A stretch of DNA of 36,011 nt, taken from contig NIVC01003874.1 of the NCBI GenBank assembly GCA_002269645.1, positions 1-36,011 of the forward strand, in the 5' to 3' direction. The translations under genes were made by a program, and so were the position numbers. This document shows, piece after piece, positions 2,527-32,839 of this stretch. Below the pieces are notes generated by a model. It was not told where the DNA came from, did not search any database, and worked only from the letters and a program-made list of their open reading frames with translations. This DNA is from Macrostomum lignano. Taxonomy: Eukaryota. Numbering within the stretch: the first letter of the stretch is position 1; every line of letters starts with the position of its first letter.

Positions 2527-2580
2527 AAGCGACTGCACCTGGAATCGAGCCTGGGCCGCTGACCAGTAGGCTACGGCCCT
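2527..2580 (-). mobile_element. SINE head-only fragment
   Basis: Minus strand AGGGCCGTAGCCTACTGGTCAGCGGCCCAGGCTCGATTCCAGGTGCAGTC. Confidence 0.6.
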
Positions 2581-2592
2581 CTTCGCGATGCA

Positions 2593-3215
2593 TGAGCTCA
2601 GCAGCCGCTTTCTAATTGTGCCTTGTTGCTGCGCTCGGACATCTCTGGCAGCTGAATCGCCTTCTCGATGCGTCTCAGAGCTTCCACTTATTCTCAGTTT
2701 TGTCAGAGCCGCAATGTTGGTGGCCCCCCGACTCAGCAGCGTGTCTGACACCGTCTAAATCGCCTGTTTTTCAAGACCGTACTGGAAGCTTTCTGGGAGA
2801 TTGGCACAACTCGGCGGTTTCGTGGGTACATCTCTGAGTGGCAGTGCCGGTAACCTAGCAGCTAGCTCTTTGCTTTTACTCGTACTGTTTTCCCTTTCCT
2901 TTTTGCGCGCCGGTTTTTTTTAGTTTGTGTTGCTTCCCTACTCGTTCATTTATACTCGCTGTCTTTCACGTTATGCTATAATATCAGTCTTCGTCACTTC
3001 GCCTAACCCTAAATAACTTCTACTATTCGAAGTCAGCGTTTAAGATGAGTCTAGTAAATTGAGTTTATAAATTTCGTTCACGAATAGATACACTGTAACA
3101 GTTATTTAGATTGATATACAGAAATCGCGTAATATTATTTTCTTAGTGAAATGCATCAGCTGATTAGTTTAACCGACGATACATGTATGGCCTTTTAAAA
3201 ACTTCAGGTTCTGCA
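2593..3215 (+). mobile_element. Second, more decayed copy of the tyrosine-recombinase fragment plus its 3' non-coding tail
   Basis: gagctcagcagccgct..., ctgggagattggc...gggtacatctct and gatgagtctagt...aacgaataga are paralogous to 1580-2300. Confidence 0.7.
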
Positions 3216-3217
3216 GC

Positions 3218-3500
3218 TAAAACTGCCCATTCCGCCGACTCCCCTGAGCAGGCATACAAGCGCGCGGATACGTACGCAGGCACACACTCACACAGGAGTG
3301 TACAGCGGCCCTAACTTTATTTTATCGTTAGGCATGTACACTTCACTGCGCCTTGGGGGGTTGGCCCTCAAGGCCGTTAATTGCACGAGCAGAGCCAAGC
3401 CGAGATTCCAATTCAGCCCCAAATTAATGTGACTGCACTTGGAATCGAGCCTGGGTTGCTGGCACACCAGAGCCTGCGCTGCCGCTGGGCTACGGCCCCC
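3218..3500 (-). mobile_element. tRNA-derived SINE, unit A ortholog with 3' end deleted
   Basis: GGGCCGTAGCCCAGCGG...GGCTCGATTCC head. One TSD remains (aacatcacggctt at ~3502-3514); the other was lost in a deletion at ~3217. Confidence 0.75.
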
Positions 3501-4223
3501 TAACATCACGGCTTATAAACTTCGATTATAAACAGGAAAATTTACCTGAAAACTAATTTTTCGAATTTTATAAAGAAACAAATAAAGTCAAAGCCGCTGT
3601 ACACTCCTGTGTGAGGGTTGCTCGTGTGTATGCCTGCTCAGGGGAGTCGCTTAAGTGACAATGTCGCTTAAACGCCTAAAGTGCGCCAGGGTTGGATGCA
3701 CGCAGCCTTTAAATAACCGTATGGTAAATCGTTGCTTCTAGACGACAGAAAACTATGCGTGTGCACGTATCGTGCAGTTTTGTATTAACATGCAAAGGAA
3801 GTAAAACGGACATTTCATTTTATCGCAAGCTTTTCGACGGTACCTGTTGTTCCGTTGGCAACGGAATTAAAATGTAAAAACAAACTGTTGCAACACAGAG
3901 CTGCTGCATTAGGAAATTACGTTGTCATTCGTAACTTTTCGCAAGTACAAATATCCAGTATGAAATATGGTATTCTAGCGTACAGTCACCGAGAGTCAAG
4001 GCTGAAAATTATTTGACTTTTTTTACGCTATCACCTTGATTGCTGAGTGTACAGGCTGAAGTTTGAAGGCAACGAAAATGGAATAAAAAGGTAGACGAGA
4101 AGAATAAACAGACGATGCTGTCATGTGTCAGGCATGCATAAATTTCCATCCCAACTTTTTTTAAACGGAGCGTTTCTGTGAAGACACTTATATACGAGTA
4201 ACAATACAACAGCTTCAGCTTAT

Positions 4224-4649
4224 TTGCAGGCTGTCACCAAACATCAAACTTCATCTGCATTCGCACATTCAGGTGACCTCCTGGCGTGTAAATTTGTCGA
4301 CTGGAAGCTAAGCAGCATCAAGACTCTGCATTTGCTGGACACGGCGGGCAAGGCAGAATGCGTTCAGGTTCGCGGTGGTGCAATGCAGGTGGTGCAAAAG
4401 CCTGCCAGCGTGCTTGCCTACTCTTCCAGCATGGCCGGGATTGACCATTTGGACGCCTCAATGCACCCGTATCTCGCGAACCGAAAGAGCATGCGCTGGT
4501 TCCACACGCTGGGATTTCATCTTCTTGCGATGCTTGTGCGGAAATCGTGGGTGATCTACCGACAGTCCGGTGGCACAAAGACCTTTCTGCATTTTGAGGC
4601 TGGCAATAAAGAGTCTGGTGAAGGACACTGGGACCAGTGGGACAACTAA
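4224..4649 (+). mobile_element. piggyBac-family transposase C-terminal fragment
   Basis: KPASVLAYSSSMAGIDHLDASMHPYLANRKSMRWFHTLGFHLLAMLVRKSWVIY matches the PGBD pattern KP...YN..MgGVD..D....Y...rk..kW..... Truncated at the 5' end by the inverted-repeat arm. Confidence 0.85.
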
Positions 4650-5210
4650 GTGGGGCGTACAGTGGGCGGTGTGCGCCCTCGCAGCCGCCTGTGAGGGCAG
4701 TCGGTAAATATTTTTATTTACACTTTACAATGAAATATGATCTGATTTTTCAATGAGAAATGGTGATTTTTTACTCGTAATACTTTATATAGCCTTAATA
4801 TGGACGATTTTTTTAATCCTAATCGAAGCCGCCCGGTGATCGCCCGGCGGCCTATGAGACGGCAACCTAAATTTGGCGTGTTTCATGTTCAAGGCAGCTT
4901 TATTTAATAGCACTGCCCTTTCAGCCTAGCGGGAGAACCGTTTTTTTATCACAAAAATAGGTGGCTACTCTTTACAATAAACGTTAGGGCTATATTTGCT
5001 GTTGCCTAGTGCCAACATTGTGAAATAATTTTTTTCGGAAAGATGTGTGAAGTTTCATAAAATTTAAATGCGCATCAGACTACTTTTAGTAGCGTAGAGC
5101 TAAGAGCCCCCGAGAACAAATTTTTGTTTGCAGTCGAAAGAAAATTAAAAGCATCAAATTGACGATAAATTTATACATGTAAATATTTGCGCTTTTAGAA
5201 AGCGGGCTTT

Positions 5211-5532
5211 TAGAGAGGAGAGAGTAGAGAGGAGAGAGGGTAGAGAGGAGAGAGGGTAGAGAGGAGAGAGGGTAGAGAGGAGAGAGGGTAGAGAGGAGAG
5301 AGGGTAGAGAGGAGAGAGGGTAGAGAGGAGAGAGGGTAGAGAGGATATAGGGTAGAGAGGAGAGAGGGTAGAGAGGATATAGGGTAGAGAGGAGAGAGGG
5401 TAGAGAGGAGAGAGGGTAGAGAGGAGAGAGGGTAGAGAGGAGAGAGGGTAGAGAGGAGAGAGAGAGGGAGAGAGGGTAGAGAGGAGAGAGGGTAGAGAGG
5501 AGAGAGGGTAGAGGGGAGAGAGGGTAGAGAGG
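5211..5532 (+). repeat. 16-bp polypurine minisatellite (AGAGGAGAGAGGGTAG)n, about 20 units
   Basis: Read directly from the sequence; it produces the spurious ORF 5210..5680. Confidence 0.95.
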
Positions 5533-6473
5533 AGTGGAGCAATGCTATGTGGGATTGAGTGAAAAACTGTCTTAGTTTTTTGCTTTTTGGGTTCGAAGAT
5601 TTGAAATTCGGAAATTTGAGGTAGCTTAAAGCCACCTTAGTGAATTTTGGGGGAAGGGGGTTACTAGGCCGAAACTTCACATTGCCGAGTATGCTCTTCC
5701 ATAAGGTTCGGCCTAGTGAAAGAGAGTGCTTTTCGGCAAAGTGAAATTTTTGCCTAATGAAAGCGCCCCGTGAATTTGTTTAGGTTGTAAATTTTTTGGA
5801 GTTTGTAATATTTGTACGTTTGTAACTCAAACTGTAATGTGATTGTGAAAGTATATATTTGCTAAAAATACAAACCCTTTCGTTTCAGATGACACACAAA
5901 TCTCGTATTATAGATAGTTACAAGCAGATACTGTTGTTCATTGTAGTAAATGTAAGACAGGACAAGTATGCAAAACAGATTGGGCGTCGTTGTTGAAAGG
6001 CTAAACTTTGTAATTAAAATGTAAAAAATATAGTAACTGTAACATTCACATGGGTAATAACGGCTTAATAAGCCTTAAAAGAGTTAGTAACCAGTTAATG
6101 AAACACGTTGATAAAAATTTAGTTCAATTATTCGAACATATAGTTCTCAACACTCAAATTTGATCAATTTAACTGTCGTTAATGCTGAAATTATTGACAC
6201 ACCCAACTCAATGCCAAGAAATGAACGAACTTTATTTTCAGAAGAAAGCTCTCTTGGGGGTTCGGATCTGTGGTGTCTTTTGGGAATTTAGCTGGCCTCT
6301 ATTCAGTGGTGTTAGCGCAGAAAAAGGGTGACAGGGGATACAGAAAATGCAAGGGAATGGGGAATCCTATATTTTCGATATTGTACAGGCCCACTCCCTC
6401 CACTCCCCAAGGGATTCAAATTTCTGGCTGGGCCAAATATGTTCCTTTTCGAAGCCATTCATTGAAGGGGGGT

Positions 6474-9204: not shown

Positions 9205-9501
9205 CCAGCGAGAGACATTACTGCCCATTCCCACGACTCCCCTGAGCACAATCGCACGGACACGTACGCAGTCACACACACAGGCATACTCTCACACAGG
9301 AGTGTACAGCAGCCCCAACTTTATTTAATTATCGTCTGGAATGTACACTTCACTGCGCCTTGTGATTGGCCCTCAAGGCTGCTAATTGCATGAGCAGAGC
9401 CAAGCTGAGATTCCAATTAGGACTTCAATAAATGTGACTGCACTTTGACTCGAGCCTGGGCCGCAGACACTACCTCACTATAGATCACTGGGCTACGGCC
9501 C
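9205..9501 (-). mobile_element. Diverged member of the same SINE family (unit B copy 25015-25400)
   Basis: GGGCCGTAGCCCAGTG head and a shared body (ttggctctgctc.tgcaatta..gccttgagggcc...aaggcgcagtgaagtgtaca). No clear TSD. Confidence 0.7.
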
Positions 9502-9739
9502 GGTGTAATTAAATTTTTATTGCTTGAGCCATCAAGCGAAATGCGAATGCCTAGTGTCAGGTACGAGCGTACATTACATTTTCCGGTTTATATTTGAAGT
9601 TTATAAGCCCTTGCACCCCTTGCACTGCGGCAAGGAAGAATTTAATGTTTCACATGATAAAAATTGGCCAAAATTCTGTTGGCAAAATGGATGCGCAGCA
9701 TTTTTATGCATAAGCTTTGGTGTTCATGTACAGCTAGAC

Positions 9740-9990
9740 TGTTTGCGAATAAACTGCAGAGCCTAAACGTTTTAGAAAGCCATATTATCAGTAAATTAAT
9801 CGGTTGATGTATTTCAGTAAATAACTTTAATAGCTTGTAGTATAACTCTTATAGTACAGTCTGTATAATTGTTACAGCGTTTCTATTCGTTATTGAATAT
9901 ATTAATAAACTTCGTCACTAGACTCCACCCAAACGCTGACACCGAATCTTAGAATTTCATGCGGTTTTAATGAATACCCGAGTCCAAGCG
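9740..9990 (-). mobile_element. Inverted third copy of the YR-element 3' tail (unit B copy ~25640-25910)
   Basis: ttacagcgtttctattcgtta...cactagactc...gctgacaccgaatc is the reverse complement of 2125-2205 (gattcggtgtcagc...gagtctagtg...aacgaatagaaacgctgtaa). Confidence 0.65.
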
Positions 9991-10523
9991 AACTAAGCTA
10001 ATACTTTTTCTAAGCTAGAGCTACTATACTATCTTTAGTAGGCTGTCACTTCTGTAAGGACAAGAAACATCTATAAATAAAATAACTTATAATAGCAAAC
10101 GGATATACATGTTGCTAAAGACTTGATGCTAAAGATTGATGAAATTTACAGACTTATTAATTTTAAATCTAAATTTCAATTGCAATAATCTCGCAATAAC
10201 TTTAAACACCAAACCAAACAGACGAAAAACTTCAGTAGAAATAAATTGGCGTGATTATACTTCTTATCAAATATTTTAAAACCGTCGATTCGCAATTTCA
10301 AATTTTCATCAAGGTCAAAAACACAGAATTTAATCAATCATTTTATCTATTGGATTGCAAAGTTATTTATTGATGATCAATGTTGTTTTAATTAGTGCTC
10401 TACAGTTGAGCATTACCTACCTTGAGTAAATGACAAGATAATTGGTTTTACTTTATACTATATAAAGCATCAGGACCATCAGGAGTACAGGAGAGGCTAT
10501 TACATCGGGTTAATATTGATATA

Positions 10524-11143
10524 CTCAGCAACAGTCAAAAGTTCCACCCCACTAAGCGTGATGATTTTTTTAACTTATTGCGAGTGACGCAACCTACGGC
10601 ACGCGCAAAGCTTATTGCCGCTTGGGGGTGGCTTGGGTCTGCTTAATGGTCCAGGCCTGGACATTAAGCAGACCTAGCTCAGGAACAACGCCCCGCCACA
10701 CCAAGCCGATGCTGTTAGTCAACTGAAGGAACAGCTACAGCTGCGCACTCTGCGCTGGCCTTCCCGGTCCCCAGACATGAATCCCATCGAGCATGTCTGG
10801 GACTTCCTAAAACGTAGCATTCGAAAAGAGAATCCACCACAGAATGTTGCGGAGAGCTCTGCGTCATGCCATTGAAAACGCTTCGGAGCGGCTTCCCCAG
10901 GACTTTCTGCGCCGCCTCATCATTGGGATGCCCCGCAGAGTCGTCGCACTTACTGCGTGCGAGGGGATCCCACACGCATCGCGATTCTAACTAAATATTG
11001 CATAAAAAATTATGATTTTACTACGAGTATTGATATTCAATCAACTTTCCCTTCCTCGCGGCGGCTTAGTTGCGTAACTTGAGGGTTGAATTGTGTGTGA
11101 AGTTTTTGCAATTTGGAGGGTAGAACTTTTGACTGTTGCTGAG
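10524..11143 (+). mobile_element. Internally deleted Tc1-type (DD34E) transposon
   Basis: TIR ctcagcaacagtcaaaagttc at the left end (after TA) and its reverse complement at ~11116-11143. After a 1-nt frameshift the peptide reads QDNAPPH...WPSRSPDMNPIEHVWDFLKR, with 34 residues between D and E. The right-hand TA is not preserved. Confidence 0.88.
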
Positions 11144-11443
11144 TCAAAAGTTGCCGAATTTATCAGATACATATACACCTAATGTTGAAAGTAATTACTG
11201 ACTTTTAAGCAAAGTAAAACTATAGCAGCAATAGACCTAGGTATTTAAAAATTTTAGAAAAAGTTACTGCCCTAGATTTTTAGGTTTTTTAGCTCGTATC
11301 GATCGTCTTCTGTATGTAGTAATTAGTCATTTTTGGTGGCTCTTTCACGTGACGTAAACTCCGGTTGAGTCATCAGGCTGAAAGTCGGATGCAAGCATGA
11401 TTAATAATTTGACATTGCTGAAAATATGATGAAGTCTGGTGCC

Positions 11444-14400
11444 TCAAATCACATTAAAGCTGCTTACAATGCCTGCTGATTCGCCATAATATTGGTTACT
11501 GACTGTCATTTGCATCTTCATTGACTCATTCACTACTGACGCATCCGGAGATTTTTTCCAAGGTGGCCACCGACCAGATCTCATCAGCACAAAGCAGGCC
11601 ACCACTGCTACCAGTGCAATGATGGCGAGAACAGCCGTAGTTGATGAAGCTGCTAGCAGTGGCCGCTCCCAGACTTCGGCCAGCCTCGTCTCTCCTGTTG
11701 ATGGAGGCGATATTTAAAGCAGGGCTGCTTTCTCGTGTATAACATCTGAAATCAGCTGCGAAACTCACCAAAACCCTTTTCGGGAAGCACGAGCAGCGCA
11801 GAGCTGCCGTTGAGCAGGCGGCACCTCACGGTGGAACCCGCTACGTCTGATGGCTGAGCGAACGCCAAGAACTGCGACATCACCGAGCTGAAGCACTGCG
11901 GCCCGATGGGCTTCGAGACATCCTGAAGTTAAGCAAAGCATACTATCTTGCACAAATAGCGAGCTACATAATGCTGCCAACAGACAAAAACAACCTTCTT
12001 TATTAGCGTCGCGGGAATCGAATAGTTAGTAGCCGTCCTCAGCTCACAGCGGTGCCTCACACTGGGACAGGCGTGTTCGGAAACCGCACGGAACTGAATT
12101 GCTCCGTTGAGTAGCCACAGCTCAGGATCAATCAACTTAAGCTGTAAGTCATTTGGTTCAACTGAAATCAATAAAACGGAGAAACGGTTGTAAATGCATT
12201 AAGAACGCATGTTTTTATGAGCTGTTATGAAATAAATGAATCACAAGAGAGGTCAACAGCAATACCTGGAGGTAATTGGCTGAATTCAATCGAACCGAGC
12301 ATTCCTGGCACAGAGAATGCGCAAGACACATTGCGGCTGCACACTTGACGCTGCCATCGTCCAAAAAACTGGAATACTTTTCCCGAAGATGTCGAGACGA
12401 TTCGATCCTGTGGTAGCAGGTAAAACGACGAGTGAACTTCATAATTGATGGTGTATGCATATTGTGGGAAATATGGCTAGTACTTCGCACAAGAAGTATA
12501 TATCAAATAGTATCAACCTTAATAGACATTAATCGGATGCCAAATATGTTTAGCCAAAATTATTATTTCTTTTTGCCTTCATTAAGTATCAAATATTTTG
12601 ATTATATCTTACAACACGGATCGGGACTTCGATGGTTCCATTCTCGCACTCCTGGTGCAGCCGACATTTCGCTGACAGGCCTCGGATGCTTGCAGCTGTT
12701 GTTAATAAAATGCGCATTGGAGCACCCGCAGCGATCTCAGTAGACTCTGGGAATCTCCATTGAATTTCTCGAACAGCTGATATAAGGAAATGACCATTGT
12801 AAGGAGCCGATCATAATAATACCTTTCTTTATTCGACATTCCAAACATTGAATAAATCAGCTGGTACATATGACATACGTTGAACAAATGATTTAAACTC
12901 TGCAAACCTACTCTCGCAAATGTCACCTTTTTACTTCATTTAAAAACAGAGTCAAATAAGTTAATTATTTGATTAAAAATTAATGAAATTAATCACAAAA
13001 ATAAATCAGTTAAAATCTTTCGTAATCGTTCTCGCTTTTTTTCTATATCGCTAATCATGCTTCTACGCTCGTATGAAGATTCTATAGTTATATATATTAT
13101 ATATTCTAATATATTATATTTATATATATATATATTATATATATATATTTTTATGTATATTTATATATATATACTGTTATATATTCTAACGTAGTGATTT
13201 TATGCGCATACATAAAATTCCTGTTTTTAATGAGCTCTATATACATTATTTATATTATACGCATATATTTATGCATTAACTTCATAATCTTAACTCAACT
13301 CACGCAGTTGCATAGCCGGCAGAGAATAGTTGACTGTTCCGGCTTGCTTGTAACAAATTATCGTAGAATTGACTGTGTCGATGAGCTCAGCCAGCAGAGT
13401 AAAATCTGTTTGAACTCTGCTCACACACTGAGAAATACGTGGCTGTGATGCTTGCTGAAGTTTTGACGTAGCAATTGTATCAGAATAAAAATACGCTAGC
13501 TGGGTATTGTAAATTGAAGGAAAATACAATTGCGTATATCTGCATATCAGTACGGGCCTACAGTGTACATCGTTTAGTTGTACACGCCTATCATAGCAAT
13601 TACTCTAAGTATATTATATTATGCTAAATATTTTAACTACGCATTGTTACATTATTCTTACCCGCTTCACTTGCACAGCAGTGACTGCGCTTCCATTGAA
13701 AAGCCTCAGCTCGCAGCGATGCCTCACTCGCCGACACTCGGCTTGAGACACAGCTCGAAACCGAATCAAACTATCTGAGAGGCTCCACAGCTCAGGCTTT
13801 ATCAGGCTGATTTCAAGTGAAGCTGGCTTAACTGAAAGTTATTCATATGTATGAAGGAAACTAGAGCAGGATAATCAAAATCTGCTACAGTTACTGAACC
13901 GCTTTGCTAATATTGCAATACAGACACTTCGCTTCTTCAAAAACATCTATGCAGAGTCTCAAAAACTGATTGAAGAAAGTTGTTTACCATCAGGTGCTGG
14001 AGTCGATTCAATCAGTTCATTGATACCGCTGCCACGGAATCTGCACGTGATGTTTCGAATGCAGACAGCAGTGTCTGAGATGATTCCAGAAAACAGGTAC
14101 AATTTTTTAACTGATCTTCATTGTGAGTAGATCGTCTGGAGGAATTGCAAAAACAATTCATATATAATCTGAGGCTCTTTAAATTTGTCCAAGCTTTTGA
14201 ATGCAAACTTGAAAGGTCAAGAGATATTACCTTCACTATGCAAAGTTATAAGAAAAACTTAAACCAGTAATTACGCTCGTATATAGCACTTTTTTCGAAA
14301 ATTTAATGCAGATAAATGCCCGGCTTACGGAATTCATTGCGATCTCCGAAGTTTGCCTTCCACATTCAAGATCTAAGTAACACCTAGCTGATACATTTCG

Positions 14401-15806
14401 ATCCATAGAAAGCAGTGAAAAACTGAATTTCGAGCCACCTATGGCCATTCTGGTCCATTTTGAAAAGATCCACAGTAATTCATGATCATCTGTAAAGAGT
14501 ATCAAACTGAGTAAATGTAGCAGCGTTAAGATTTTTTGTGGAAGTTGATAATATTTATGTAATCTAAAGAGAATTTATAAGAGTTCTCTTCTCATTGCTT
14601 AAAACTAATTATCCATTATAATCGATAGGCCGATGGCGCATAATCCGTAGTACAAATAACCTGCATCAACATAAACAATGTTGAGACTTATTCAGATTTA
14701 TGTAACTACGAGTAACTATGGAAACTATGTTGCTTCTCTGTCCGTATCTGGCCGAGAAAAGAAACTATAAACATAAGATTGCATAACTTTTAACTTATAT
14801 TTTCTGCACTGAACAGTTTAACTTCTGAATTGAATAAAACTGAAAAAACTGCCAGATACTGTTGACGTCTTGTATCACTCACGGACATTGAACTCAAATT
14901 CGAACCCTTCACGGACAACAGAGCCGTCAGTAGTGAAAATTAGGGTAACGCTATGCGAAAACGTGTATGACGGATGAAGAATTCTATGATTGCCTGAAAT
15001 CGCTTGCAGAGCCGTGTGTTGATATCGCGGAACAAGTCCTGAATATATCCTAAGATAGTCGCGGCCAGATTCCGTGTTGAACTTTGTGAATCGAATGAAA
15101 ACACGGGAATTTCTGGGCACGTAAATACTCCAAGCTTTTTTGTAGTTATTGCGGTAGGACCCGACATCTGGATGGCTCCGTCTGACACCGCTTCTCTGCC
15201 GAATGACCTCAGTAGCAGCTGAAATTCCATTTTCATCCGAGATCAAATAAATCAGCAAAAGTCAACCAGAGTGCTGTTATAAACGTAAGGCATAAAATTC
15301 ACCTGGAATCGATTCCCACTGGCGTTCGTAAGAAAGCCGAAATCCGGATCTCGTGTGAAACCCGTCACTTCGAAACCGCACAACAAAGGGCGAATTCACC
15401 CAGAACTCAGACTCAGTCGCGTTTGCATGCACAAGTCGAAACTTCTCTGAGCTGCTTGATGCGTAGATTGCGCTTTCATAAATTAAAACTTTGTCGCAGC
15501 ACGAATCCACATCCAGCTTGCTGAATCGGATTCGGCTGACACCACGTGGTCGAATAGACCAGGAAACATCCAAATTGTTTGAATACTGGCCTCCAGAGGA
15601 GGGGCACGCGATCGTTCCAGATGACGAGTAAAGCGTCCTACCGGAACAGCACTCTGCGTTTTTAGTAACCCACGTTTTAGCAAGAGCAAACTGGTTTTTT
15701 CTGACTCTAATCAAAACAGAATAAACGTACCGGATGGAGAAAACCAAAATAACAAGCCAAACACAATGAGTTGAAAGTAACGAAAAAATCTGGTGCATGT
15801 TTTCAT
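11444..15806 (-). CDS. 13-exon gene for a type I membrane protein: signal peptide, 2 CUB domains, four ~105-aa unrecognised Cys modules, TM, short tail; in-frame TGA in exon 5
   Basis: Manual splice model. Exons (minus strand): 15731-15806, 15303-15653, 14883-15218, 14329-14489, 13988-14135, 13662-13831, 13304-13454, 12879-12926, 12613-12776, 12266-12407, 11995-12161, 11769-11922, 11444-11694. All 12 introns are GT-AG and phase-compatible, and the exons total 2319 nt = 773 codons. N-terminus MKTCTRFFRYFQLIVFGLLFWFSPSECC; TM TAVLAIIALVAVVACFVLM followed by RSGRWPPWKK; many N-x-S/T sequons. TGA at 14118-14120 is in frame. Confidence 0.8.
13086..13186. repeat. Degenerate (TA)n tract in intron 7 (unit B ~28994-29096)
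   Basis: Read directly; it carries the 2-bp indel that shifts the offset from 15908 to 15910. Confidence 0.85.
14883..15218 (-). other. CUB domain 2 (exon 3), cysteine-free; same in copy 2 at 30793-31128
   Basis: SG...SHP...YRNNYKKAWSI...VFIRFTKFNTESGRDYLRIYSG...LIFTTDGSVVREGFEFEF follows the CUB consensus; phase 1-1 exon. Confidence 0.9.
15303..15653 (-). other. CUB domain 1 (exon 2); same in copy 2 at 31213-31563
   Basis: CSGRTLYSSSGTIACP...YSNNLDVSWSI...IRFSKLDVDSCCDKVLIY...FRSDGFHTRSGFRLSY follows the CUB consensus; phase 1-1 exon. Confidence 0.9.
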
Positions 15807-16823
15807 CGCAGTCTGGTTCAGCTGCAGGGCGCTGCGGGCATGGCATACGAGCTAGTAAGCGGAAAACTGCTGTTTCAGTGTTCCTGTTCGTATTTATGCC
15901 CGTTAATCTTCTTTCCACTAAATTAAATCAACTTCCAGTAAACAGGCCGAACATCAAATTTAGACAGCTTTTAATTAAAGTATATAAAACCAAATCTGGC
16001 AATATCTAGGCAACTCTTCCACTAATTTCGAGGCTAATTTTGACACAAGACTTCCAATTTTCGCTGATTTTGGTTTCGAGTTTATCCATATAGAACGTAA
16101 TAAATCATAAATATTGTAATACAGAATGCCTTGAAGGTAAAAGTGTGCCGTATCTCAACACTTCATTTCAGAAATCACCCCCTGAAGTATTTCTGGTGTT
16201 TTGGTCATATCAATATAGAGAATTGATTTCATATCTTCATAATTTGCTATCAAAGCATAGCGAAGTGTAGTACATTTAAACTATAATGGTCTTACAAGAA
16301 ATCTCAGGTGAAAACTAAAACTATTGACTGGGTTGGATGGTGCTTTATGGAAAGCAATGAAAACTTGTTAAGACAGTGTACGAGGACTTCTGTCGCTTAA
16401 GTCGAATGCTTTGCTAATTTTAGAACAGATAGAATGTTTAATGAATCTGTGGAGTCGTTTTTTCCTAAAACACATCACATGTCTTCCAACTGCAAAACAA
16501 CTTATTTTTAGTTAATTAAAATGGAACACGACATAATGCTCATACAATGATCATACGTGTTTTTTAGCTTTGAGTAGGACAGAATTTACAAATTTGAACC
16601 TATAAGCTGAAGCTGTTGTATTGTTACTCGTATATAAGTGTCTTCACAGAAACGCTACGCATAAAAAAGTTAGGATGGAAAATTTATGCATGCATGACAT
16701 ATGACAGCATCGTCTGTTTATTCTTCTCGTCTACCTTTTTATTCCATTTTCGTTGCCTTCAAACTTCAGCCTGTACACTCAGCAATCAAGGTGATAGCGT
16801 AAAAAAAGCCAAATAATTTTCAG

Positions 16824-16929
16824 CCTAACCCTAACCCTAACCCTAACCTAACCTACCTACCTACCTACCTACCTACCTACCTACCTACCTACCTACCTAC
16901 CTACCTACCTACCTACCTAAATACCTACC
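16824..16929 (+). repeat. CCCTAA / CCTAA / (CCTA)n repeat, unit B
   Basis: cctaaccctaaccctaaccctaacctaacctacctac... Confidence 0.9.
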
Positions 16930-17353
16930 CATTGTACCAGCTTACTTTTTCGTATCTTGCAGATGCTCCAGTCTGTAAATCATTTCCCTCTTTAAAAATG
17001 TCCCTAATAAATCATGTAATTAGACTATTCCGGCTTCATTGGGAACAAGCTTACTTCGTAAAAGCAATTTTTACAGTTTTGTTGAAAACTGCCGCAGTAT
17101 TTTTATTATAAACGAGTTATTATAATTACAGGTATGACATCTCTAAGCTAATAATATTTTTTTGCGTAATCTACTCTTTGCAACATTGTTAGACGCTGAC
17201 CCGAAATCGGGCCATTCCCGTCGGCAACGGGTGTGCTGAGATGATGGTTGATTTGCCATAGACTTTTGCAAACGCGGGCCGTTCGCTTCGGGGCTGGCGG
17301 GATGACCCGAAATCGGGCCATCTATGTAGCTCGTTCAAAGACAGTGCTGATCG

Positions 17354-18890
17354 GTGAGCGCATCCACACCAGCTCCAGCTCCCGGTCATGGGTCCGAGCT
17401 CAGCAGCCGCTCTCAAATTGCGCCCCGACATCTCTGGCAGCTGAATCTAATTCTCGATACGTCTCAGAGCTTTCCCGTATTCTTAGTCCGTCAGAGCCGC
17501 CATTTTGGTGGCCTTCTGACTCAGTGGAGGTTCGCCACCGCCTGCAGCGTTTGTTTCGCAAGACCGGAATGGAAATGTAGAGTGTTCTACCTCCCGTTAA
17601 AAAAGGTTAAAAGAAGATAATCGTATAATGCTACTATAAGTAAGTAAGTACACGCATGTGCGCCTAAGCTTTGAATGAATCACGCTACCAGGAAAAGATG
17701 TTACCAAAATGATACGCCATGAGCCATTTTCCCCTTTTAGCGCAACACGTGGTTTGTAATGATGCTATTTTGGATCAAAAAGTTGCCTATAAATACAAGC
17801 GGTCCGAAGCGGACCAGGAGCCAACTCCCGACGAGAGGAGAAGCTCCGAAGAGGAAGCCTTAGGAGGACTTCCTGATCACCAAGTCAATCGAGACTCGGT
17901 CGAGTTGTTGCGGTAAGCCTTCCTTATTTGCGCCCGTTGTGTTAGAGACGTCTCGCTCAAGTCTATTGAGACTTGAGTCTATTTGAGTCTGTTGAGACTC
18001 TTGAGTCTGTTTAGACTCCATTGGTTGCAGTCTCCAGAAGGACTGCCCCTGATAGATCTTAGAGGACTATCAGTGGTTTCCGGAGCCATACCTAGAGTGC
18101 ATAAAGGCACTGCTAGAAGAAGGAGGCTTAATTCAAACCGCTGTTCGGCGCAGGGTACCCATTGTTGATACGAGGCCTCTGATTGGTCCTGACTGAAGAT
18201 ACCGGCCGGAGGAACTTATCGGAAGTACAAGAGGAACCAGGACCAGAGCAACTGAAGAATCAAGGCGCCTGATCTACGAGATCACATAGAGACAAGCGAG
18301 ATCTACTCGAAGACTACAGAAGAGATATCTCCAAGCGACGTCAACGTAAGAAGTACCTTTAATTGACTTACTGGGCTGCCTAGCTATTGAGCTAGAAGTG
18401 AGTGTTCTTTGATTACCATAAGTCGGGTAATAAGGGACACATCAGAAACTTTCAGCTTCTCTACGCACTCGCTCCGCCGTGGTGGAGCGACATCTGCTTT
18501 CAATGCTCGGAGATTGGCGCAGCTCGGCGATTTCGCGGGTACATCTCTGATGGCAGTGCCGGTAACCTAGCGAAGGTCAGAACCTAGCGGCTCTTCGGTC
18601 TATGTCTGCTGGCCTCGTTCATTTATACTCGCTGTCTTTCACGTTATGCTATAATAACAGTCTTCGTCACTTCGCCTAACCCTAAATAACTTCTACTATT
18701 CGAAGTCAGCGTTTAGGATGAGTCTAGTAAATTGAGTTTATAAATTTCGTTAACGAATAGATACACTGTAACAGTTATTTAGATTGTTATACAGAAATCG
18801 TAATATTATTTTTTTAGTGAAATGCATCAGCTGATTAGTTTAACCGACAATACATGTATGGCCTTTTAAAAACTTCAGGTTCTGCAGCTA
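17354..18890 (+). mobile_element. Chimeric tyrosine-recombinase fragment and tail (unit B), split by an 869-bp insertion; same in unit C at 33264-34800
   Basis: VEVRHRLQRLFRKTGME breaks at 17575 and resumes at 18445 (gaaactttcagcttctctacgcactcgctccgcc). At gtctgctggc/ctcgttcatttatac it jumps from the first YR copy to the tail of the second. Confidence 0.75.
17576..18444. mobile_element. Probable solo LTR, 869 bp
   Basis: TG...CA ends flanked by a 4-bp GAAA duplication (17572-17575 and 18445-18448). The empty site has a single GAAA in unit A (1772-1775). No recognisable coding content. Confidence 0.65.
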
Positions 18891-19009
18891 AAACAATCTA
18901 GTTACAAATTAACACCAAACTAGTGCATAAAAATTCTGCGTGTCTTTTGTTTTTCCAGCAAAACTTTGGTTCATCTATATTATTTGAAAAAAAGGGAACA
19001 TCACGGCTT

Positions 19010-19372
19010 TTTTATTAGAAACAGGGGGGTTGTGTGCACCCTGGCGCACTTTAAGCGACATAGGCACACAACCGGCGAGAGGCATTACTGCCCATTCCGC
19101 CGACTCCCCTGAGCAGGCATACAAGCGCGCGGATACGTTACGCAGGCACACACTCACACAGGACTGTACAGCGGCCCTAACTTTATCAATTGTTAGGCAT
19201 GTACACTTCACTGCGCCTTGGGGGGTTGGCTCTCAAGGCCGTTAATTGCACAAGCGAGCCAAGCCGAAATTCCAATTCAGCCCCAAATTAATGTGACTGC
19301 ACTTGGAATCGAGCCTGGGTTGCTCTCACACCAGAGCCTGCGCTAGACCGCTGGACTACGCCCCCCCCCCCT
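19010..19372 (-). mobile_element. Full-length tRNA-derived SINE with 13-bp target-site duplication
   Basis: Minus strand GGGCGTAGTCCAGCGGTCTAGCGC...AGCAACCCAGGCTCGATTCC gives A-box and B-box-like motifs; 3' end AATAAAAAA; TSD aacatcacggctt at 18997-19009 and 19373-19385. Confidence 0.8.
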
Positions 19373-20107
19373 AACATCACGGCTTATAAACTTCGATTAT
19401 AAACAGGAAAATTTACCTGAAAACTAATTTTTCGAATTTTATAAAGAAATAAATACAGTCAAAGCCGCTGTACACTCCTGTGTGGGGGTCTGCTCGTGTG
19501 TATGCCTGCCCAGGGGAGTCGCTTAAGTGACAATGTCGCTTAAACGCCCAAAGTGCGCCAGGGTTGGATGCACGCAGCCTTTAAATTACCGTATGGTAAA
19601 TTGTTGCTTCTAGACGACAGAAAACGATGCGTGTGCACGTATCGTACACGTCTGCAGTTTTGCAAAGGAAACATGCAAATAAAGTAAAACGGACATTTCA
19701 TCTTATCGCAAGCTTTTCGACGGTACCTGTTGTTCCGTTAGCAACGAAATTAAAATTAAAAAACTAACTGTTGCAACACAGAGCTGCTGCATTAGGAAAC
19801 TAAGTTGTCATTCGTAACTTTTCGCAAGTACAAATATCCAGTATGAAAAATGGTATTCTAGCGTACAGTCACCGAGAGTCGAGGCAGAAAATTATTTGAC
19901 TTTTTTTACGCTATCACCTTGATTGCTGAGTGTACAGGCTGAAGTTTGAAGGCAACAAAAATGGAATAAAAAGGTAGACGAGAAGAATAAACAGACGATG
20001 CTATCATATGTCATGCATGCATAAATTTTCCATCCTAACTTTTTTTAAACGGAGAGTTTCTGTGAAGACACTTATATACGAGTAACAATACAACAGCTTC
20101 AGCTTAT

Positions 20108-20530
20108 TTGCAGGCTGTCACCAAACTTCAAACTTCATCTGCATTCGCACATTCAAGTGACCTCCTGGCGTGTAAATTTGTCGACAAGCAAAGCAGCATC
20201 AAGACTCTGCATTTGCTGGACACGGCGGGCAAGGCAGAATGCGTTCAGGTTCGCGGTGTTGCAAAGCAGGTGGTGCAAAAGCCTGCCAGCGTGCTTGCCT
20301 ACTCTTCCAGCATGGCCGGGATTAACCATTTGGACGTCTCAATGCACCCGTATCTCGCAAACCGAAAGAGCATGCGCTGGTTCCACACGCTAGGATTTCA
20401 TCTTCTTGCGATGCTTGTGCGGAACTCGTGGGTGATCTACCGACAGTCCGGTGACACAAAGACTTTTCTGCATTTTGAGGCTGGCAATAAAGAGTCTGGT
20501 GAAGGACACTGGGACCAGTGGGACAACTAA
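20108..20530 (+). mobile_element. piggyBac-family transposase fragment, unit B
   Basis: Ortholog of 4224-4649 with several substitutions and a 3-nt indel. Confidence 0.85.
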
Positions 20531-21106
20531 GTGGGGCGTACAGTGGGCGGTGTGCGCCCTCGCGGCCGCCTGTGAGGGCAGTCGGTAAATATTTTTATTT
20601 ACACTTTACAATGAAATATGATCTGATTTTTCAATGAGAAATGGTGATTTTTTACTCGTAATACTTTATATAGCCTTAATATGGACGATTTTTTTAATCC
20701 TAATCGAAGCCGCCCGGTGATCGCCCGGCGGCCTATGAGGCGGCAACCTAAGTTTGGCGTGTTTCATGTTCAAGGCAGCTTTATTTAATAGCACTGCCCT
20801 TTCAGCCTAGCGGGAGAACCGTTTTTTATCACAATAATAGGTGGTTACTCTTTACAATAAACGTTAGGGCTATATTTGCTGTTGCCTAGTGCCAACATTG
20901 TGAAATAATTTTTTTCGGAAAGATGTGTGAAGTTTCATAAAATTTAAATGCGCATCAGACTACTTTTAGTAGCGTAGAGCTAAGAGCCCCCGAGAACAAC
21001 TTTTTGTTTGCAGTCGAAAGAAGATTAAAAGCATCAAATTGACGATAAATTTACACCTGTAAATATTTGCGCTTTTAGAAAGCGGGCTTTTAGAAAAGAA
21101 GTAGGG

Positions 21107-21319
21107 AGAGGAGAGAGGGTAGAGAGGAGAGAGGGTAGAGAGGAGAGAGGGTAGAGAGGAGAGAGGGTAGAGAGGAGAGAGGGTAGAGAGGAGAGAGGGT
21201 AGAGAGGAGAGAGGGTAGAGAGGAGAGAGGGTAGAGAGGAGAGAGGGTAGAGGGGAGAGAGGCTAGAGAGGAGAGAGGGTAGAGAGGGAGAGGGTAGAGG
21301 GGAGAGAGGGTAGAGAGGA
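21107..21319 (+). repeat. Same 16-bp polypurine minisatellite, about 13 units
   Basis: Read directly; shorter than the unit A array. Confidence 0.95.
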
Positions 21320-24300
21320 GTGGAGCAATGCTATGGGGGATTGAGTGAAAAACTGTCTTAGTTTTTTGCTTTTTGGGTTTGAAGATTTGAAATTCGGAAA
21401 TTTGAGGTAGCTTAAAGCCACCTTAGTGAATTTGGGGGGGGGTTACTAAGCCGAAACTTCACATTGCCGAGTATGCTCTTCCATAAGGTTCGGCCTAGTG
21501 AAAGAGAGTGCTTTTCGGCAAAGTGAAATTTTTGCCTAATGAAAGCGCCCCGTGAATTTGTTTCGGTTGTAAATTTTTATGGAGTTTGTAATATTTGTAC
21601 GTTTGTAACTCACACTGTAATGTGATTGTGAAAGTATATATTTGCTAAAAATACCAACCCTTTCGTTTCAGATGACACACAAATCTCGAAGTATAGATAG
21701 TTACAAGCAGATACTGTTGTTCATTGTAGTAAATGTAAGACAGGACAAGTATGCAAAACAGATTAGGCGTCGTTGTTGAAAGGCTAAACTTTGTAATTAA
21801 AATGTAAAAAATATAATAACTGTAACATTCACATGGGTAATAACGGCTTAATAAGCCTTAAAAGAGTTAGTAACCAGTTAATGAAACACATTGATAAAAA
21901 TTTAGTTCAATTATTCGAACATATAGTTCTCAACACTCAAATTTGATCAATTTAACTGTCGTTAATGCTGAAATTATTGACACACCCAACTCAATGCCAA
22001 GAAATGAACGAACTTTATTTTCAGAAGAAAGCGCTCTTGGTGGTTCGGATCTGTGGTGTCTTTTGGGAATTTAGCTGGCCTCTATTCAGTGGTGTTAGCG
22101 CAGAAAAAGGGTGACAGGGGATACAGAAAATGCAAGGGAATGGGGAATCGTATATTTTCGATATTGTACAGGCCCACTCCCTCCACTCCCCAAGGGATTC
22201 AAATTTCTGGCTGGGCCAAATATGTTCCTTTTCGAAGCCATTCATTGAAGGGGGGTTTCACAAACTCGAAATTTCACAACGTCGAAAGCACCTTCTTTCA
22301 CACGATCGAAATTTCACAAGGTCGAAATTTCATAACATCGAGAACTCAAATAGCAACCACTTTCACAAGGTCGAAACTTCACAAGGTCAAAATTTCACAA
22401 CATCGAATTCGAAAACTTTAGCAAGAGACTTCACCAACTACTTTTAGCAAAAAGCGCGCAGTGTGTTGGTGGGGAAGTATGTATCAGTTTATTTCGAACT
22501 GTATTGCGAGAGGATATTATAGCGTTTGTCTTCTTTGTCCATGAGTACGGGCTTGTAAAAACGATTGATTTATCAACTGCGAGCTTTTGTATGACGGACA
22601 CTGCACACTTGCCGCTAGAATTAGCTGCAAGGCTTCCCAGAATATGGGTGCAGAAGGGAGGTGTTGCCGTCCATTCCGCAGACCCCTGCGATCACGGGCA
22701 GCTGGTGCTACTGTGTCGCGCAGGGAGATCCCGTGGTGCCGGTGTTCTCAGTTCTGTCCCCCTCCAGGAGGTGAGTGATCGGTCGCCCGGTAGCCCTTAG
22801 GCATGGACGAGGTGGCAGAAATTCCCGTGCTTGAAACTGTCGAAAAAATCCAGATTTGCGCCGCGGTGAGCCTGTCCTAAATAAAGAGGAGGCATTCTAA
22901 AATTAAATGCTTCCTTGAACTGACCAGCCATGACCTGAGATAGCCGTGGTCACCGCCTTGGTGCCAGACTGCGGTTGATTCCAAGCAAGGCCTGCGGAGG
23001 GCAGGAGGAAGAGGGGATCCTGCCGGCAGAGCTGAACTATCGGCGGTTATCTCTCCTTGTGCTTCGTTGCACCCCCACAAGTGGTTACAATAGCAGTGGG
23101 ATGGAGGCCACAGGCAGGGGGTCAAAGAAAGGGCTAATTGGTGATTGGTCATCTCGTTGTTGGGTTGATCCGAGTGCCCGGGGATCCGTTGTTGGCAAAG
23201 TAAATCATGTTGATCAAACGCTCCCCGAATAAGTTCAGTTCGCTTTGTCATCAGAAGGCCTATTTTGAGTGGCTCTTAATGATCCTGCTTTCAAAAGAAC
23301 AACCGTTCTTGATCGAGTTAAGTTTATTGACAGTTTAATTTATTTTTGCGAGCAATTTACCTAGAAACCATAATTGACAATCTGTATGTATCTAAGGATG
23401 AATAGAAACTTAAATAGGAGAATTCAGAATGATAAATTTGAATTTCTGTTGGAATTTCACAGACTCATACAATTTTGTTAATATGCAATAAAAAGCTTTG
23501 CACATCAGCTCGAAATTAATATCATGAATTTTGCAAAAATCAATATTTTATGGTATTTTGTGTTGACAATTGTTCATATTCGTTCATTCATTAACTGATG
23601 ACTTTTGAGGTTAATTGTTCTGCAAACAGAAAAAACTTCATTTCTTCTATGCATGAACGAAGATCTATGGATGGATGAATATCAGTTAAAACCGCGCTGT
23701 TAGTCAAGAAACTTTAGTGTCTTTTTAGATCTAAATTTTAGAGACTAGATTACGATCAACAATAAGCGCGTGGGTATGTTCAAATTTCATTATCGTAAAA
23801 AATGTATTCATTCGCGGAGTAATTTTAATGTTTGTTAAAACTCACGAAGTTGCCTTGACAATCGGGGTAAGGTTCAATTTCAATGCGTCAGCTGCCTTGG
23901 CTTCCCACCGCTTCATCGATCTGATCGTCCTGACGAGAACGCATTTAAAAACTATGGGGTCGTACTCTAAAGCTGTCGTAGCGTAAGTTTGATCGTACGT
24001 AGGAACTTTTACACTGTGGAGATAGGAGTTAAAAACGATCTTATCGTATATATCGGGCCCTATATACTCAGTAACACCGAAAATTCTCCATCACCGAAGA
24101 TTCCTTCGAGGTCGCCACTTTTGAGAGTGCAGGTAAAGTCTCTGAATCTTTGCGAGTGACGCAAATCAGCTACGCCACGGCAGACTTGAGTTAAGGAATG
24201 AAGTGGGGGGAGCGGTGTGCGAGGGTTGGACGGATTAAAGCTACCCGATCAGTTTTCTAGTAATTTTTTTCAGAATTACTAGAAGTTCAAGAGAAATTGC

Positions 24301-25097: not shown

Positions 25098-25232
25098 CTC
25101 TCACACAGGAGTGTACAGCATCCCTAACTTTATTTAATTATCCTCTCACACAGGAGTGTACAGCAGCCCTAACTTTATTTAATTATCCTCTCACACAGGA
25201 GTGTACAGCAACCCTAACTTTATTTAATTATC
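25098..25232 (+). repeat. 45-bp tandem triplication inside the SINE of unit B
   Basis: ctctcacacaggagtgtacagcaNccctaactttatttaattatc x3; single copy in unit A at ~9289-9333. Confidence 0.9.
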
Positions 25233-27516: not shown

Positions 27517-30500
27517 CTACCATGCAATGATGGCGAGAACAGCCGTAGTTGATGAAGCTGCTAGCAGTGGCCGCTCCCAGACTCCCGCCAGCCTCGTCTC
27601 TCCTGTTGATGGAGGCGATATTTAAAGCAGGGCTGCTTCCTCGTGTATAACATCTGAAATCAGCTGCGAAACTCACCAAAACCCTTTTCGGGCAGCACGA
27701 GCAGCGCAGAGCTGCCGTTGAGCAGGCGGCATCTCACAGTGGAACCCGCTACGTCTGATGGCTGAGCGAACGCCAAGAACTGCGACATCACCGAGCTGAA
27801 GCACCGCGACCCGGTGGGCTTCGAGACATCCTGAAGTTAAGCAAAGCATACTATCTTGCACAAATAGCGAGCTACATAATGCTGCCAACAGACAAAAACA
27901 ACCTTCTTTATTAGCGTCGCGGGAATCGAATAGTTAGTAGCCGTCCTCAGCTCACAGCGGTGCCTCACACTGGGACAGGCGTGTTCGGAAACCGCACGGA
28001 ACTGAATTGCTCCGTTGAGTAGCCACAGCTCAGGATCAATCAACTTAAGCTGTAAGTCATTTGGTTCAACTGAAATCAATAAAACGGAGAAACGGTTGTA
28101 AATGCATTAAGAACGCATGTTTTTATGAGCTGTTATGAAATAAATGAATCACAAGAGAGGTCAACAGCAATACCTGGAGGTAATTGGCTGAATTCAATCG
28201 AACCGAGCATTCCTGGCACAGAGAATGCGCAAGACACATTGCGGCTGCACACTTGACGCTGCCATCGTCCAAAAAACTGGAATACTTTTCCCGAAGATGT
28301 CGAGACGATTCGATCCTGTGGTAGCAGGTAAAACGACGAGTGAACTTCATAATTGATGGTGTATGCATATTGTGGGAAATATGGCTAGTACTTCGCACAA
28401 GAAGTATATATCAAATAGTATCAACCTTAATAGACATTAATCGGATGCCAAATATGTTTAGCCAAAATTATTATTTCTTTTTGCCTTCATTAAGTATCAA
28501 ATATTTTGATTATATCTTACAACACGGATCGGGACTTCGATGGTTCCATTCTCGCACTCCTGGTGCAGCCGACATTTCGCTGACAGGCCTCGGATGCTTG
28601 CAGCTGTTGTTAATAAAATGCGCATTGGAGCACCCGCAGCGATCTCAGTAGACTCTGGGAATCTCCATTGAATTTCTCGAACAGCTGATATAAGGAAATG
28701 ACCATTGTAAGGAGCCGATCATAATAATACCTTTCTTTATTCGACATTCCAAACATTGAATAAATCAGCTGGTACATATGACATACGTTGAACAAATGAT
28801 TTAAACTCTGCAAACCTACTCTCGCAAATGTCACCTTTTTACTTCATTTAAAAACAGAGTCAAATAAGTTAATTATTTGATTAAAAATTAATGAAATTAA
28901 TCACAAAAATAAATCAGTTAAAATCTTTCGTAATCGTTCTCGCTTTTTTTCTATATCGCTAATCATGCTTCTACGCTCGTATGAAGATTCTATAGTTATA
29001 TATATTATATATTCTAATATATTATATTTATATATATATATATTATATATATATATTTTTATGTATATTTATATAGCTATATACTGTTATATATTCTAAC
29101 GTAGTGATTTTATGCGCATACATAAAATTCCTGTTTTTAATGAGCTCTATATACATTATTTATATTATACGCATATATTTATGCATTAACTTCATAATCT
29201 TAACTCAACTCACGCAGTTGCATAGCCGGCAGAGAATAGTTGACTGTTCCGGCTTGCTTGTAACAAATTATCGTAGAATTGACTGTGTCGATGAGCTCAG
29301 CCAGCAGAGTAAAATCTGTTTGAACTCTGCTCACACACTGAGAAATACGTGGCTGTGATGCTTGCTGAAGTTTTGACGTAGCAATTGTATCAGAATAAAA
29401 ATACGCTAGCTGGGTATTGTAAATTGAAGGAAAATACAATTGCGTATATCTGCATATCAGTACGGGCCTACAGTGTACATCGTTTAGTTGTACACGCCTA
29501 TCATAGCAATTACTCTAAGTATATTATATTATGCTAAATATTTTAACTACGCATTGTTACATTATTCTTACCCGCTTCACTTGCACAGCAGTGACTGCGC
29601 TTCCATTGAAAAGCCTCAGCTCGCAGCGATGCCTCACTCGCCGACACTCGGCTTGAGACACAGCTCGAAACCGAATCAAACTATCTGAGAGGCTCCACAG
29701 CTCAGGCTTTATCAGGCTGATTTCAAGTGAAGCTGGCTTAACTGAAAGTTATTCATATGTATGAAGGAAACTAGAGCAGGATAATCAAAATCTGCTACAG
29801 TTACTGAACCGCTTTGCTAATATTGCAATACAGACACTTCGCTTCTTCAAAAACATCTATGCAGAGTCTCAAAAACTGATTGAAGAAAGTTGTTTACCAT
29901 CAGGTGCTGGAGTCGATTCAATCAGTTCATTGATACCGCTGCCACGGAATCTGCACGTGATGTTTCGAATGCAGACAGCAGTGTCTGAGATGATTCCAGA
30001 AAACAGGTACAATTTTTTAACTGATCTTCATTGTGAGTAGATCGTCTGGAGGAATTGCAAAAACAATTCATATATAATCTGAGGCTCTTTAAATTTGTCC
30101 AAGCTTTTGAATGCAAACTTGAAAGGTCAAGAGATATTACCTTCACTATGCAAAGTTATAAGAAAAACTTAAACCAGTAATTACGCTCGTATATAGCACT
30201 TTTTTCGAAAATTTAATGCAGATAAATGCCCGGCTTACGGAATTCATTGCGATCTCCGAAGTTTGCCTTCCACATTCAAGATCTAAGTAACACCTAGCTG
30301 ATACATTTCGATCCATAGAAAGCAGTGAAAAACTGAATTTCGAGCCACCTATGGCCATTCTGGTCCATTTTGAAAAGATCCACAGTAATTCATGATCATC
30401 TGTAAAGAGTATCAAACTGAGTAAATGTAGCAGCGTTAAGATTTTTTGTGGAAGTTGATAATATTTATGTAATCTAAAGAGAATTTATAAGAGTTCTCTT

Positions 30501-32733: not shown

Positions 32734-32839
32734 CCTAACCCTAACCCTAACCCTAACCTAACCTACCTACCTACCTACCTACCTACCTACCTACCTACCT
32801 ACCTACCTACCTACCTACCTACCTACCTAAATACCTACC
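32734..32839 (+). repeat. CCCTAA / CCTAA / (CCTA)n repeat, unit C
   Basis: Same as the unit B copy at offset +15910. Confidence 0.9.

Follow-up and report, generated by a model that had tools for sequence, protein, structure and literature searches.

A duplicated four-exon cassette in a CUB domain-containing protein gene of Macrostomum lignano

The DNA analyzed here, referred to as the window, comprises positions 1–36,011 of contig NIVC01003874.1 in assembly GCA_002269645.1 of the free-living flatworm Macrostomum lignano. On its minus strand, between positions 11345 and 15806, lies a gene of 13 exons for an M. lignano “CUB domain-containing protein”. The gene encodes, in order, a signal peptide, two CUB domains, four modules designated a1, b1, a2, and b2, a transmembrane helix, and a tail of ~50 residues. 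Units of ~15.9 kb are arrayed in tandem along the window, so that the gene is present in two full copies, with a third represented by its 5′ end. An initial annotation of this DNA, made from the letters and their translations, singled out positions 11769–14489 as a hidden four-fold repeat of one ~105-residue module, each copy encoded by two exons. The interval was well drawn: it begins, on the minus strand, with the opening base of a1 (14489, in its first exon) and closes with the final base of b2 (11769, in its last exon).

The gene model comes from aligning a full-length M. lignano protein (PAA76314.1/A0A267FST9; hereafter P0006) to the window and checking every splice site. P0006 is intact, has 759 residues, and shares the a-b-a-b layout of the window gene, from signal peptide and two CUB domains through to transmembrane helix and tail; exon identities between the two are 79–98%. 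All introns of the window gene are GT-AG, 24 of 24 splice sites are intact, and the spliced product amounts to 759 codons, one of which is a TGA. A protein search with the conceptual translation matched only M. lignano “CUB domain-containing protein” entries, with stretches identical to the window exon translations. The Pfam CUB family (PF00431) matches two stretches of the window protein (E = 7e-16 overall; best stretch, 185–275) and also matches P0006 (E = 3e-18); the first CUB domain was assigned to exon 2 from its CUB sequence motifs and from the alignment with P0006. A Kyte-Doolittle plot averaged over 19 residues has one strong hydrophobic peak, of 2.99, which is the transmembrane helix in exon 12. 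The gene model contains 12 N-glycosylation sequons (N-x-S/T; range, 8–14). Two candidate features were rejected: an ATG at 15798 in the first exon gave way to the one at 15806 that P0006 supports, and a junction of exons 4 and 5 through a weak donor at 14265 and acceptors at 14110 or 14074 was dropped in favor of the phase-0 acceptor at 14135 that P0006 shows.

Between the CUB domains and the transmembrane helix, the gene repeats itself. The a1b1 and a2b2 segments are 34% identical over 205 residues (BLASTP E = 2e-32), and their Smith-Waterman scores stand well clear of shuffled sequences, with z = 15.7 for a1/a2 and z = 33 for b1/b2. All eight cysteines of the ~210-residue unit are invariant, both between the two repeats and in every paralogue group. 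The two repeats also agree in their splice positions and phases (1-0-1-0-1): each a pair and each b pair of exons runs 1-0-1 between canonical AG/GT borders, with the same phases in three annotated paralogues, and each CUB exon runs 1-1. Much of this had been read correctly in the initial annotation, namely the ~210-residue repeat, its cysteines, and its phases. The peptides quoted there also lie where they were placed, all eight on the minus strand within 11769–14489, and they recur ~15.9 kb away in the second gene copy. The exon count needs revision. Exons 4–7 had been aligned with exons 9–12, and the splice positions do match; since the junction between b1 and a2 (…AMQL/PVREIQW) is direct in both P0006 and P0001, an older model with exon stretches identical to the window translation, the second set is exons 8–11 (Table 1). 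Both the absence of an exon between b1 and a2 and an in-frame TGA in exon 5 had been overlooked. The two-fold repeat of the a-b cassette is genuine.

Table 1. Exons of the window gene and the corresponding region of its second copy
Feature	Positions	Strand	Content	Basis
Exon 1	15731..15806	-	Initiator ATG, signal peptide (MKTCTRFFRYFQLIVFGLLFWFSPS); phase 1 at its end	tblastn of full-length P0006, exon model
Exon 2	15303..15653	-	CUB domain 1, single exon, phase 1-1	CUB sequence motifs, P0006 alignment, exon model
Exon 3	14883..15218	-	CUB domain 2, single exon, phase 1-1	Best Pfam CUB stretch 185–275, exon model
Exon 4	14329..14489	-	a1 N-terminal half (…SARCYLDLEC…), phase 1-0	Peptide match, P0006 alignment, exon model
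Exon 5	13988..14135	-	a1 C-terminal half (…VCIRNITCRF…), phase 0-1; in-frame TGA at 14120–14118	P0006 alignment, exon model
Exon 6	13662..13831	-	b1 N-terminal half (…LIKPELW…VRHRCEL…), phase 1-0	Peptide match, exon model
Exon 7	13304..13454	-	b1 C-terminal half (QASQPRISQC…), phase 0-1; joined without a further exon to exon 8	Exon model, paralogue junction
Exon 8 (initially numbered 9)	12613..12776	-	a2 N-terminal half (…SAKCRLHQEC…), phase 1-0	Peptide match, exon model
Exon 9 (initially numbered 10)	12266..12407	-	a2 C-terminal half (…VCSRNVSCAF…), phase 0-1	Peptide match, exon model
Exon 10 (initially numbered 11)	11995..12161	-	b2 N-terminal half (…LIDPELW…VRHRCEL…), phase 1-0	Peptide match, exon model
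Exon 11 (initially numbered 12)	11769..11922	-	b2 C-terminal half (DVSKPIGPQC…), phase 0-1	Peptide match, exon model
Exon 12	11468..11694	-	Juxtamembrane segment, transmembrane helix (AVLAIIALVAVVACFVLM), cytoplasmic tail with NQYY	Exon model, hydropathy
Exon 13	11345..11377	-	Terminal micro-exon PDDSTGVYVT*	Exon model, paralogue mapping
Second-copy a1-b1-a2-b2 coding region	27677..30399	-	Nearly identical; same TGA at 30030–30028	

How the repeat arose is suggested by the paralogues. Three of them, P0006, P0014, and P0012, could be mapped exactly, as spliced sequences, onto their own genomic loci. In each, a CUB domain is one 1-1 exon, and a and b are each two exons in a 1-0-1 arrangement; the internal intron falls 54–56 residues into each a and b module, in the window as in the three paralogues. 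The transmembrane exon (phase 1-0) is followed in all three by a terminal micro-exon ending …VY[VL][TN]. P0012 has four CUB domains and P0014 has two, and both have one a and one b; the a-b-a-b arrangement occurs only in the subfamily of P0006 and the window gene. PAA86082.1 (A0A267GLA2) and PAA75150.1 (A0A267FMX3), which have two or four CUB domains and one a-b pair, share with PAA76314.1 the exons for CUB, modules a and b, the 1-0-1 plan, the transmembrane exon, and the VY micro-exon.

The existence of two paralogue groups with a single a-b pair and the same exon plan suggests that the repeat arose by in-frame duplication of a four-exon cassette. On the simplest reading, the ancestral gene would have had one a-b pair, as these two groups still have, and the cassette would have been duplicated in tandem within the gene in the P0006/window subfamily. 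Phase-1 boundaries on both sides of the cassette would have preserved the reading frame. According to Patthy's rule, class 1-1 modules are associated with exon shuffling in metazoan extracellular proteins. The CUB, a, and b modules likewise begin and end in phase 1; here, in contrast to shuffled modules, the event is an intragenic cassette duplication in a lineage-restricted family. There is no sign of a or b having been shuffled elsewhere, as every true match has them between the CUB domains and the transmembrane helix.

The cytoplasmic tails (window positions 11345–11377 and 11468–11560 on the minus strand, P0012, and P0014) are conserved in two short motifs. An N-x-Y motif is kept in all three paralogue groups (NQYY, NPY, NSY), and each group has a C-terminal …[GE]VY[VL][TN] tyrosine motif on its own terminal micro-exon. 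Both may be phosphotyrosine or sorting signals.

The two full copies in the window both carry a lesion that distinguishes them from the intact paralogue P0006. Read in the required phase 0, exon 5 has TIYSQ*RSVKK… where P0006 has TIYSQRRSAKK…, the TGA standing in place of CGA (Arg); the codon before it also differs, being CAG in P0006 and CAA in the window. In the transmembrane exon of copy 2 (27400–27523, corresponding to 11488–11614 in copy 1), four separate 1-bp deletions shift the frame and destroy the helix; none of them lies in a long homopolymer. The differences between the copies all cluster in 11342–11906, which could reflect gene conversion or a poorly assembled patch. A nonsense codon in both copies, together with the frameshifts of copy 2, leaves three options: (i) the copies are pseudogenes; (ii) they yield only isoforms that skip a1; or (iii) the lesions are assembly errors.

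If the first option holds for both copies, the modules seen here are relics, and only paralogues elsewhere, such as P0006, are functional. We regard this as a serious possibility, with a chance somewhat short of even. The stop codon and the deletions point that way, as do a ratio of nonsynonymous to synonymous substitution rates (dN/dS) against P0006 of 0.47 overall and about 1 for b1, and the transposon remnants that fill the rest of the repeat unit. However, every splice site is intact, all other exons are open, and exons are mostly better conserved than introns in the comparison with P0006; dN/dS for b2 is 0.24. Skipping exons 4 and 5, the a1 cassette, keeps the frame, and P0001 and P0005, older models of this gene and of a paralogue, join a CUB exon directly to exon 6. 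Single-base errors are also plausible in a long-read assembly, and older paralogue models show out-of-frame stretches as well.

The family appears to be small. A profile hidden Markov model of b, searched with HMMER at full sensitivity against 1.84 billion (1.84e9) representative proteins, gave nine true matches, all from M. lignano and including the full-length P0006. A profile search had been proposed in the initial annotation for all four modules, and for b it found true relatives only in this species. The only match outside flatworms, the bacterial protein P0011 with Big_13 repeats (PF19077), is considered spurious: its score is a sum over repeats, to which five nearly identical partial matches to “dGxyqFRAV” contribute ~7 bits apiece and cover 36–39 of 93 profile positions. 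Annotation of the paralogues goes no further than “hypothetical” or “CUB domain-containing” and leaves the a/b region blank. In the older UniRef M. lignano models P0002, P0003, P0004, and P0005, exons 8, 9, 11, or 12 are out of frame or module exons are skipped; P0001, for example, joins exon 8 to exon 11. The family's present annotation cannot be relied on, and artefacts may account for some of the “isoforms”. A literature search on M. lignano CUB domain proteins turned up only unrelated papers on bioadhesion.

What kind of modules are a and b? Conservation in the family is strongest in a heptapeptide of b, V-[RK]-H-R-C-E-L, that is found in every b module of three paralogue groups otherwise 34–49% identical. 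It falls in a predicted strand and is encoded at 13710–13730 and 12043–12063 (minus strand) in the window. The cysteines of b are C32, C39, C66, and C90. AlphaFold2, given a six-row alignment, modeled P0006 b2 with a mean predicted local distance difference test (pLDDT) score of 84.8 and a predicted template modeling score (pTM) of 0.76, as eight strands and two short helices. Foldseek searches of the PDB with this model gave weak matches only, with a best E of 9e-4 and template modeling (TM) scores of 0.45–0.61. The neighbors are mostly immunoglobulin (Ig) domains of the constant type (T-cell receptor, IgA, IgE, IgM, ICAM-1, CD22) plus a few other sandwiches, and the only FN3-like one is the N-domain of purple acid phosphatase (E about 0.02–0.03). 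From the model, we conclude that b probably has an Ig-like sandwich fold, with no close relative among solved structures.

The closest comparison for b is with the C1-set Ig domains, i.e., the constant domains of T-cell receptor, IgA, IgE, and IgM. The b model aligns with these at TM scores of 0.5–0.61 and a root-mean-square deviation of about 4 Å, and b resembles them in its ~105 residues, extracellular location, and phase 1-1 exon boundaries. Identity, on the other hand, is ≤16%, there is no Pfam Ig match, and Foldseek E values are only 1e-3 to 3e-2. Moreover, Ig domains have one cysteine pair linking strands B and F, whereas b has its four cysteines at other positions. None of the Ig sequence families (Pfam Ig, I-set, C1-set, V-set) gave a profile match, and the cysteines are off the B/F pattern. 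With eight predicted strands, Ig constant and ICAM/CD22 neighbors, and TM scores up to 0.61, the b model falls in the class of Ig-like sandwiches; as modeled, the resemblance is one of fold, not of family membership.

Module a carries two C-x5-C motifs. The model of P0006 a2 (pLDDT 72.5, pTM 0.59) is all-beta; it has six long strands, and its last 15 residues are disordered. Its weak neighbors are of jelly-roll or lectin kinds (birnavirus VP2, the FedF lectin domain, carbohydrate-binding modules), and the sandwich topology predicted for it is uncertain. The initial annotation had suggested a possibly new disulfide-bonded beta-sandwich of IPT/TIG or Ig type. The general idea is borne out for both modules by conserved cysteines and all-beta sandwich predictions; the Ig-like fold suits the model of b. 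An IPT/TIG (PF01833) or FN3 (PF00041) identity was rejected, with no Pfam match to either and no IPT/TIG structure among the top 50 Foldseek matches.

Searches by sequence place neither module in a known family. Pfam found only CUB on the window protein (E ≤ 1) and on P0006 and P0012 (E ≤ 10); the extra weak Pfam matches of P0014 are confined to the transmembrane and tail region, outside a and b. The suggestion of a possibly new domain is supported in that neither module matches any Pfam family. A search of PDB sequences with the b profile found nothing, and the same search with the a profile found one match, to a viral envelopment polyprotein (6h3v; E = 0.1), that was disregarded. The idea that a or b is a degenerate CUB domain was also rejected, as hhalign against the family's own CUB profile gave probabilities of 0.07% and 0.3%. 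We consider a and b to be orphan, unannotated modules with predicted beta-sandwich folds.

The bolder proposal in the initial annotation, that a and b are themselves copies of one module, did not fare as well. Smith-Waterman scores of a-b pairs, set against shuffled sequences, have z of 0.07–2.15. Profile-profile alignment with hhalign gave a probability of 0.17% for two-sequence profiles and 0.72% for six-row alignments (four or five distinct sequences), the latter alignment being out of register. The a profile scored −2.7 to +1.3 bits on b modules with all filters off, and a column-shuffle test of the a-b profile-profile alignment gave p = 0.05 (local) and p = 0.23 (semi-global). The best a-b local alignment is just five columns, [KRH]-C-x-[LV]-x, a motif already seen in the initial annotation, and the local signal of p ≈ 0.05 rests on this single five-residue R-C-x-L motif. 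The weak motifs proposed as common to a and b are thus no better than chance. In P0006, the b profile matched two stretches, not four. The models differ as well, with six long strands in a against eight short strands and two helices in b, and the two top-50 Foldseek lists have no PDB neighbor in common; this structural comparison is by proxies (strand pattern and neighbor lists) rather than by superposition of coordinates, and strand positions in the two models are roughly co-linear, at a pLDDT of 72.5 for the a model.

A true four-fold repeat would require that one ancestral two-exon module of ~105 residues gave rise to a-b, and this to a-b-a-b, with a and b diverging beyond recognition by sequence. 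We think this unlikely, while noting that several features favor it. The modules are similar in length (102–111 residues for a, 107–110 for b), have four cysteines each, and share the two-exon 1-0-1 plan with a phase-0 intron 54–56 residues in, in all paralogues. Two motifs, R-C-x-L (a38/b39) and [VI]-x-C-x-hydrophobic (a84/b90), lie at matching positions in predicted strands, labeled C and F by position only. Sub-threshold alignments of the a profile hit the b modules of all four proteins, and most of them, the longer ones without exception, lie at a similar offset, from which a short one in P0006 b1 departs; the best ungapped diagonal (+6) pairs a84 with b90. Against these stand the sequence and profile tests and model differences given above, together with a different placement of the second and third cysteines in a and b. 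A fuller version of the proposal, in which a and b are two undescribed families confined to Macrostomum (or macrostomid flatworms) that descend from a single two-exon Ig-like ancestor, making the locus a hidden four-fold repeat, is similarly doubtful. The four-fold reading is not supported, and by the rule set in the initial annotation, which took predicted structures of a and b that do not superimpose to mean a two-fold repeat, the locus would be a two-fold repeat only, with some probability left for a very old relationship between a and b.

One further explanation starts from a known two-domain unit. The zona pellucida (ZP) module has eight cysteines and comprises ZP-N and ZP-C, and CUZD1 has the layout CUB-CUB-ZP-transmembrane. 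It is very improbable that the a-b pair is a highly divergent unit of this kind, chiefly a ZP module: the order CUB-CUB-(~210 residues with eight conserved cysteines)-transmembrane does recall CUZD1, as a lead only, and both halves are predicted beta-sandwiches, but Pfam Zona_pellucida (PF00100) has no match on the four proteins, no ZP-N or ZP-C structure is among the top 50 Foldseek matches for either module, no R-x-[KR]-R furin site occurs from b2 to the transmembrane helix (where the sequence reads …LPEKGFGETRLAEVWERPLL…), the unit is ~210 residues long as against ~260 for a ZP module, and the C-x5-C pairs of a are unlike the ZP-N pattern.

The gene-containing 10.3 kb (9286–19615 and 25185–35525) is 99.5% identical between copies, and the rest of the unit is 91–97% identical; 1–5442 likewise aligns with 15636–21320. 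The window opens with part of a third unit, in which the start codon of the gene is at about 171 on the minus strand. Each repeat unit contains what is probably a transposon remnant, judging from a weak match to the C-terminus of DDE_Tnp_1_7 (piggyBac-type transposase) at 4182–4646 and 20066–20527 on the plus strand (E = 1.7e-4; 21.5 bits against a cut-off of 22.4). Just downstream of the gene, a short open reading frame (…LPQDFLRRLIIGMPRRVVALTACEG…; 10844–10990, plus strand, and the region 26632–26904) may derive from a Tc1/mariner transposase, whose C-terminus it resembles by eye. Simple repeats are also present. A 16-bp GA-rich tandem array at 5211–5534 and 21106–21320 accounts for strong spikes in GC skew; (ACCT)n microsatellites lie at 990–1104, 16846–16929, and 32756–32839; a 45-bp sequence is repeated three times at 25098–25236, at the junction of duplicated blocks; and an AT-rich microsatellite lies inside intron 7, at 13060–13180.

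Overall, the interval is likely to be the membrane-proximal ectodomain of a type I membrane glycoprotein, made of two different ~105-residue modules whose a-b cassette has been duplicated once. In CUZD1, CDCP1, NETO, and DCBLD, CUB domains at the N-terminus precede extracellular modules of other kinds, one transmembrane helix, and a short tyrosine-bearing tail. The layout of the M. lignano proteins is alike; we found no match of a or b, by sequence or structure, to the ZP, LDLa, or discoidin modules of these proteins. In a protein of this design, the CUB domains would probably bind ligand, the a-b units would probably form a glycosylated stalk or a secondary binding surface, and the tail, with its conserved N-x-Y and V-Y-[VL] tyrosines, would probably serve in signaling or sorting.

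Several points weigh against this reading. First, the function is wholly inferred. Second, calling a and b “different” depends on the lack of detectable similarity and on the neighbor lists of predicted models, while the two share size, exon plan, and cysteines at comparable positions (38/84 in a, 39/90 in b). Third, the model of a is of moderate confidence, and its Foldseek matches are weak (E ≥ 0.012, TM score ≤ 0.49). Fourth, the full-sensitivity search covered b only; word-indexed searches with a and with the CUB pair missed known paralogues and are little informative. Fifth, the window copies may be decaying, as the premature stop suggests, and b1 has a dN/dS of about 1.1, a value based on a very small number of changes.

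The a and b modules are additions to a very familiar kind; they open no long-standing question and hold no surprise for specialists in extracellular proteins. The stop codon and frameshifts in the window copies call for caution among users of these gene models. The locus provides a clean, fully mapped case of the in-frame duplication of a phase-1-symmetric exon cassette. Its two unannotated modules, both predicted beta-sandwiches, are possible additions to domain databases and would allow better annotation of a small M. lignano family.

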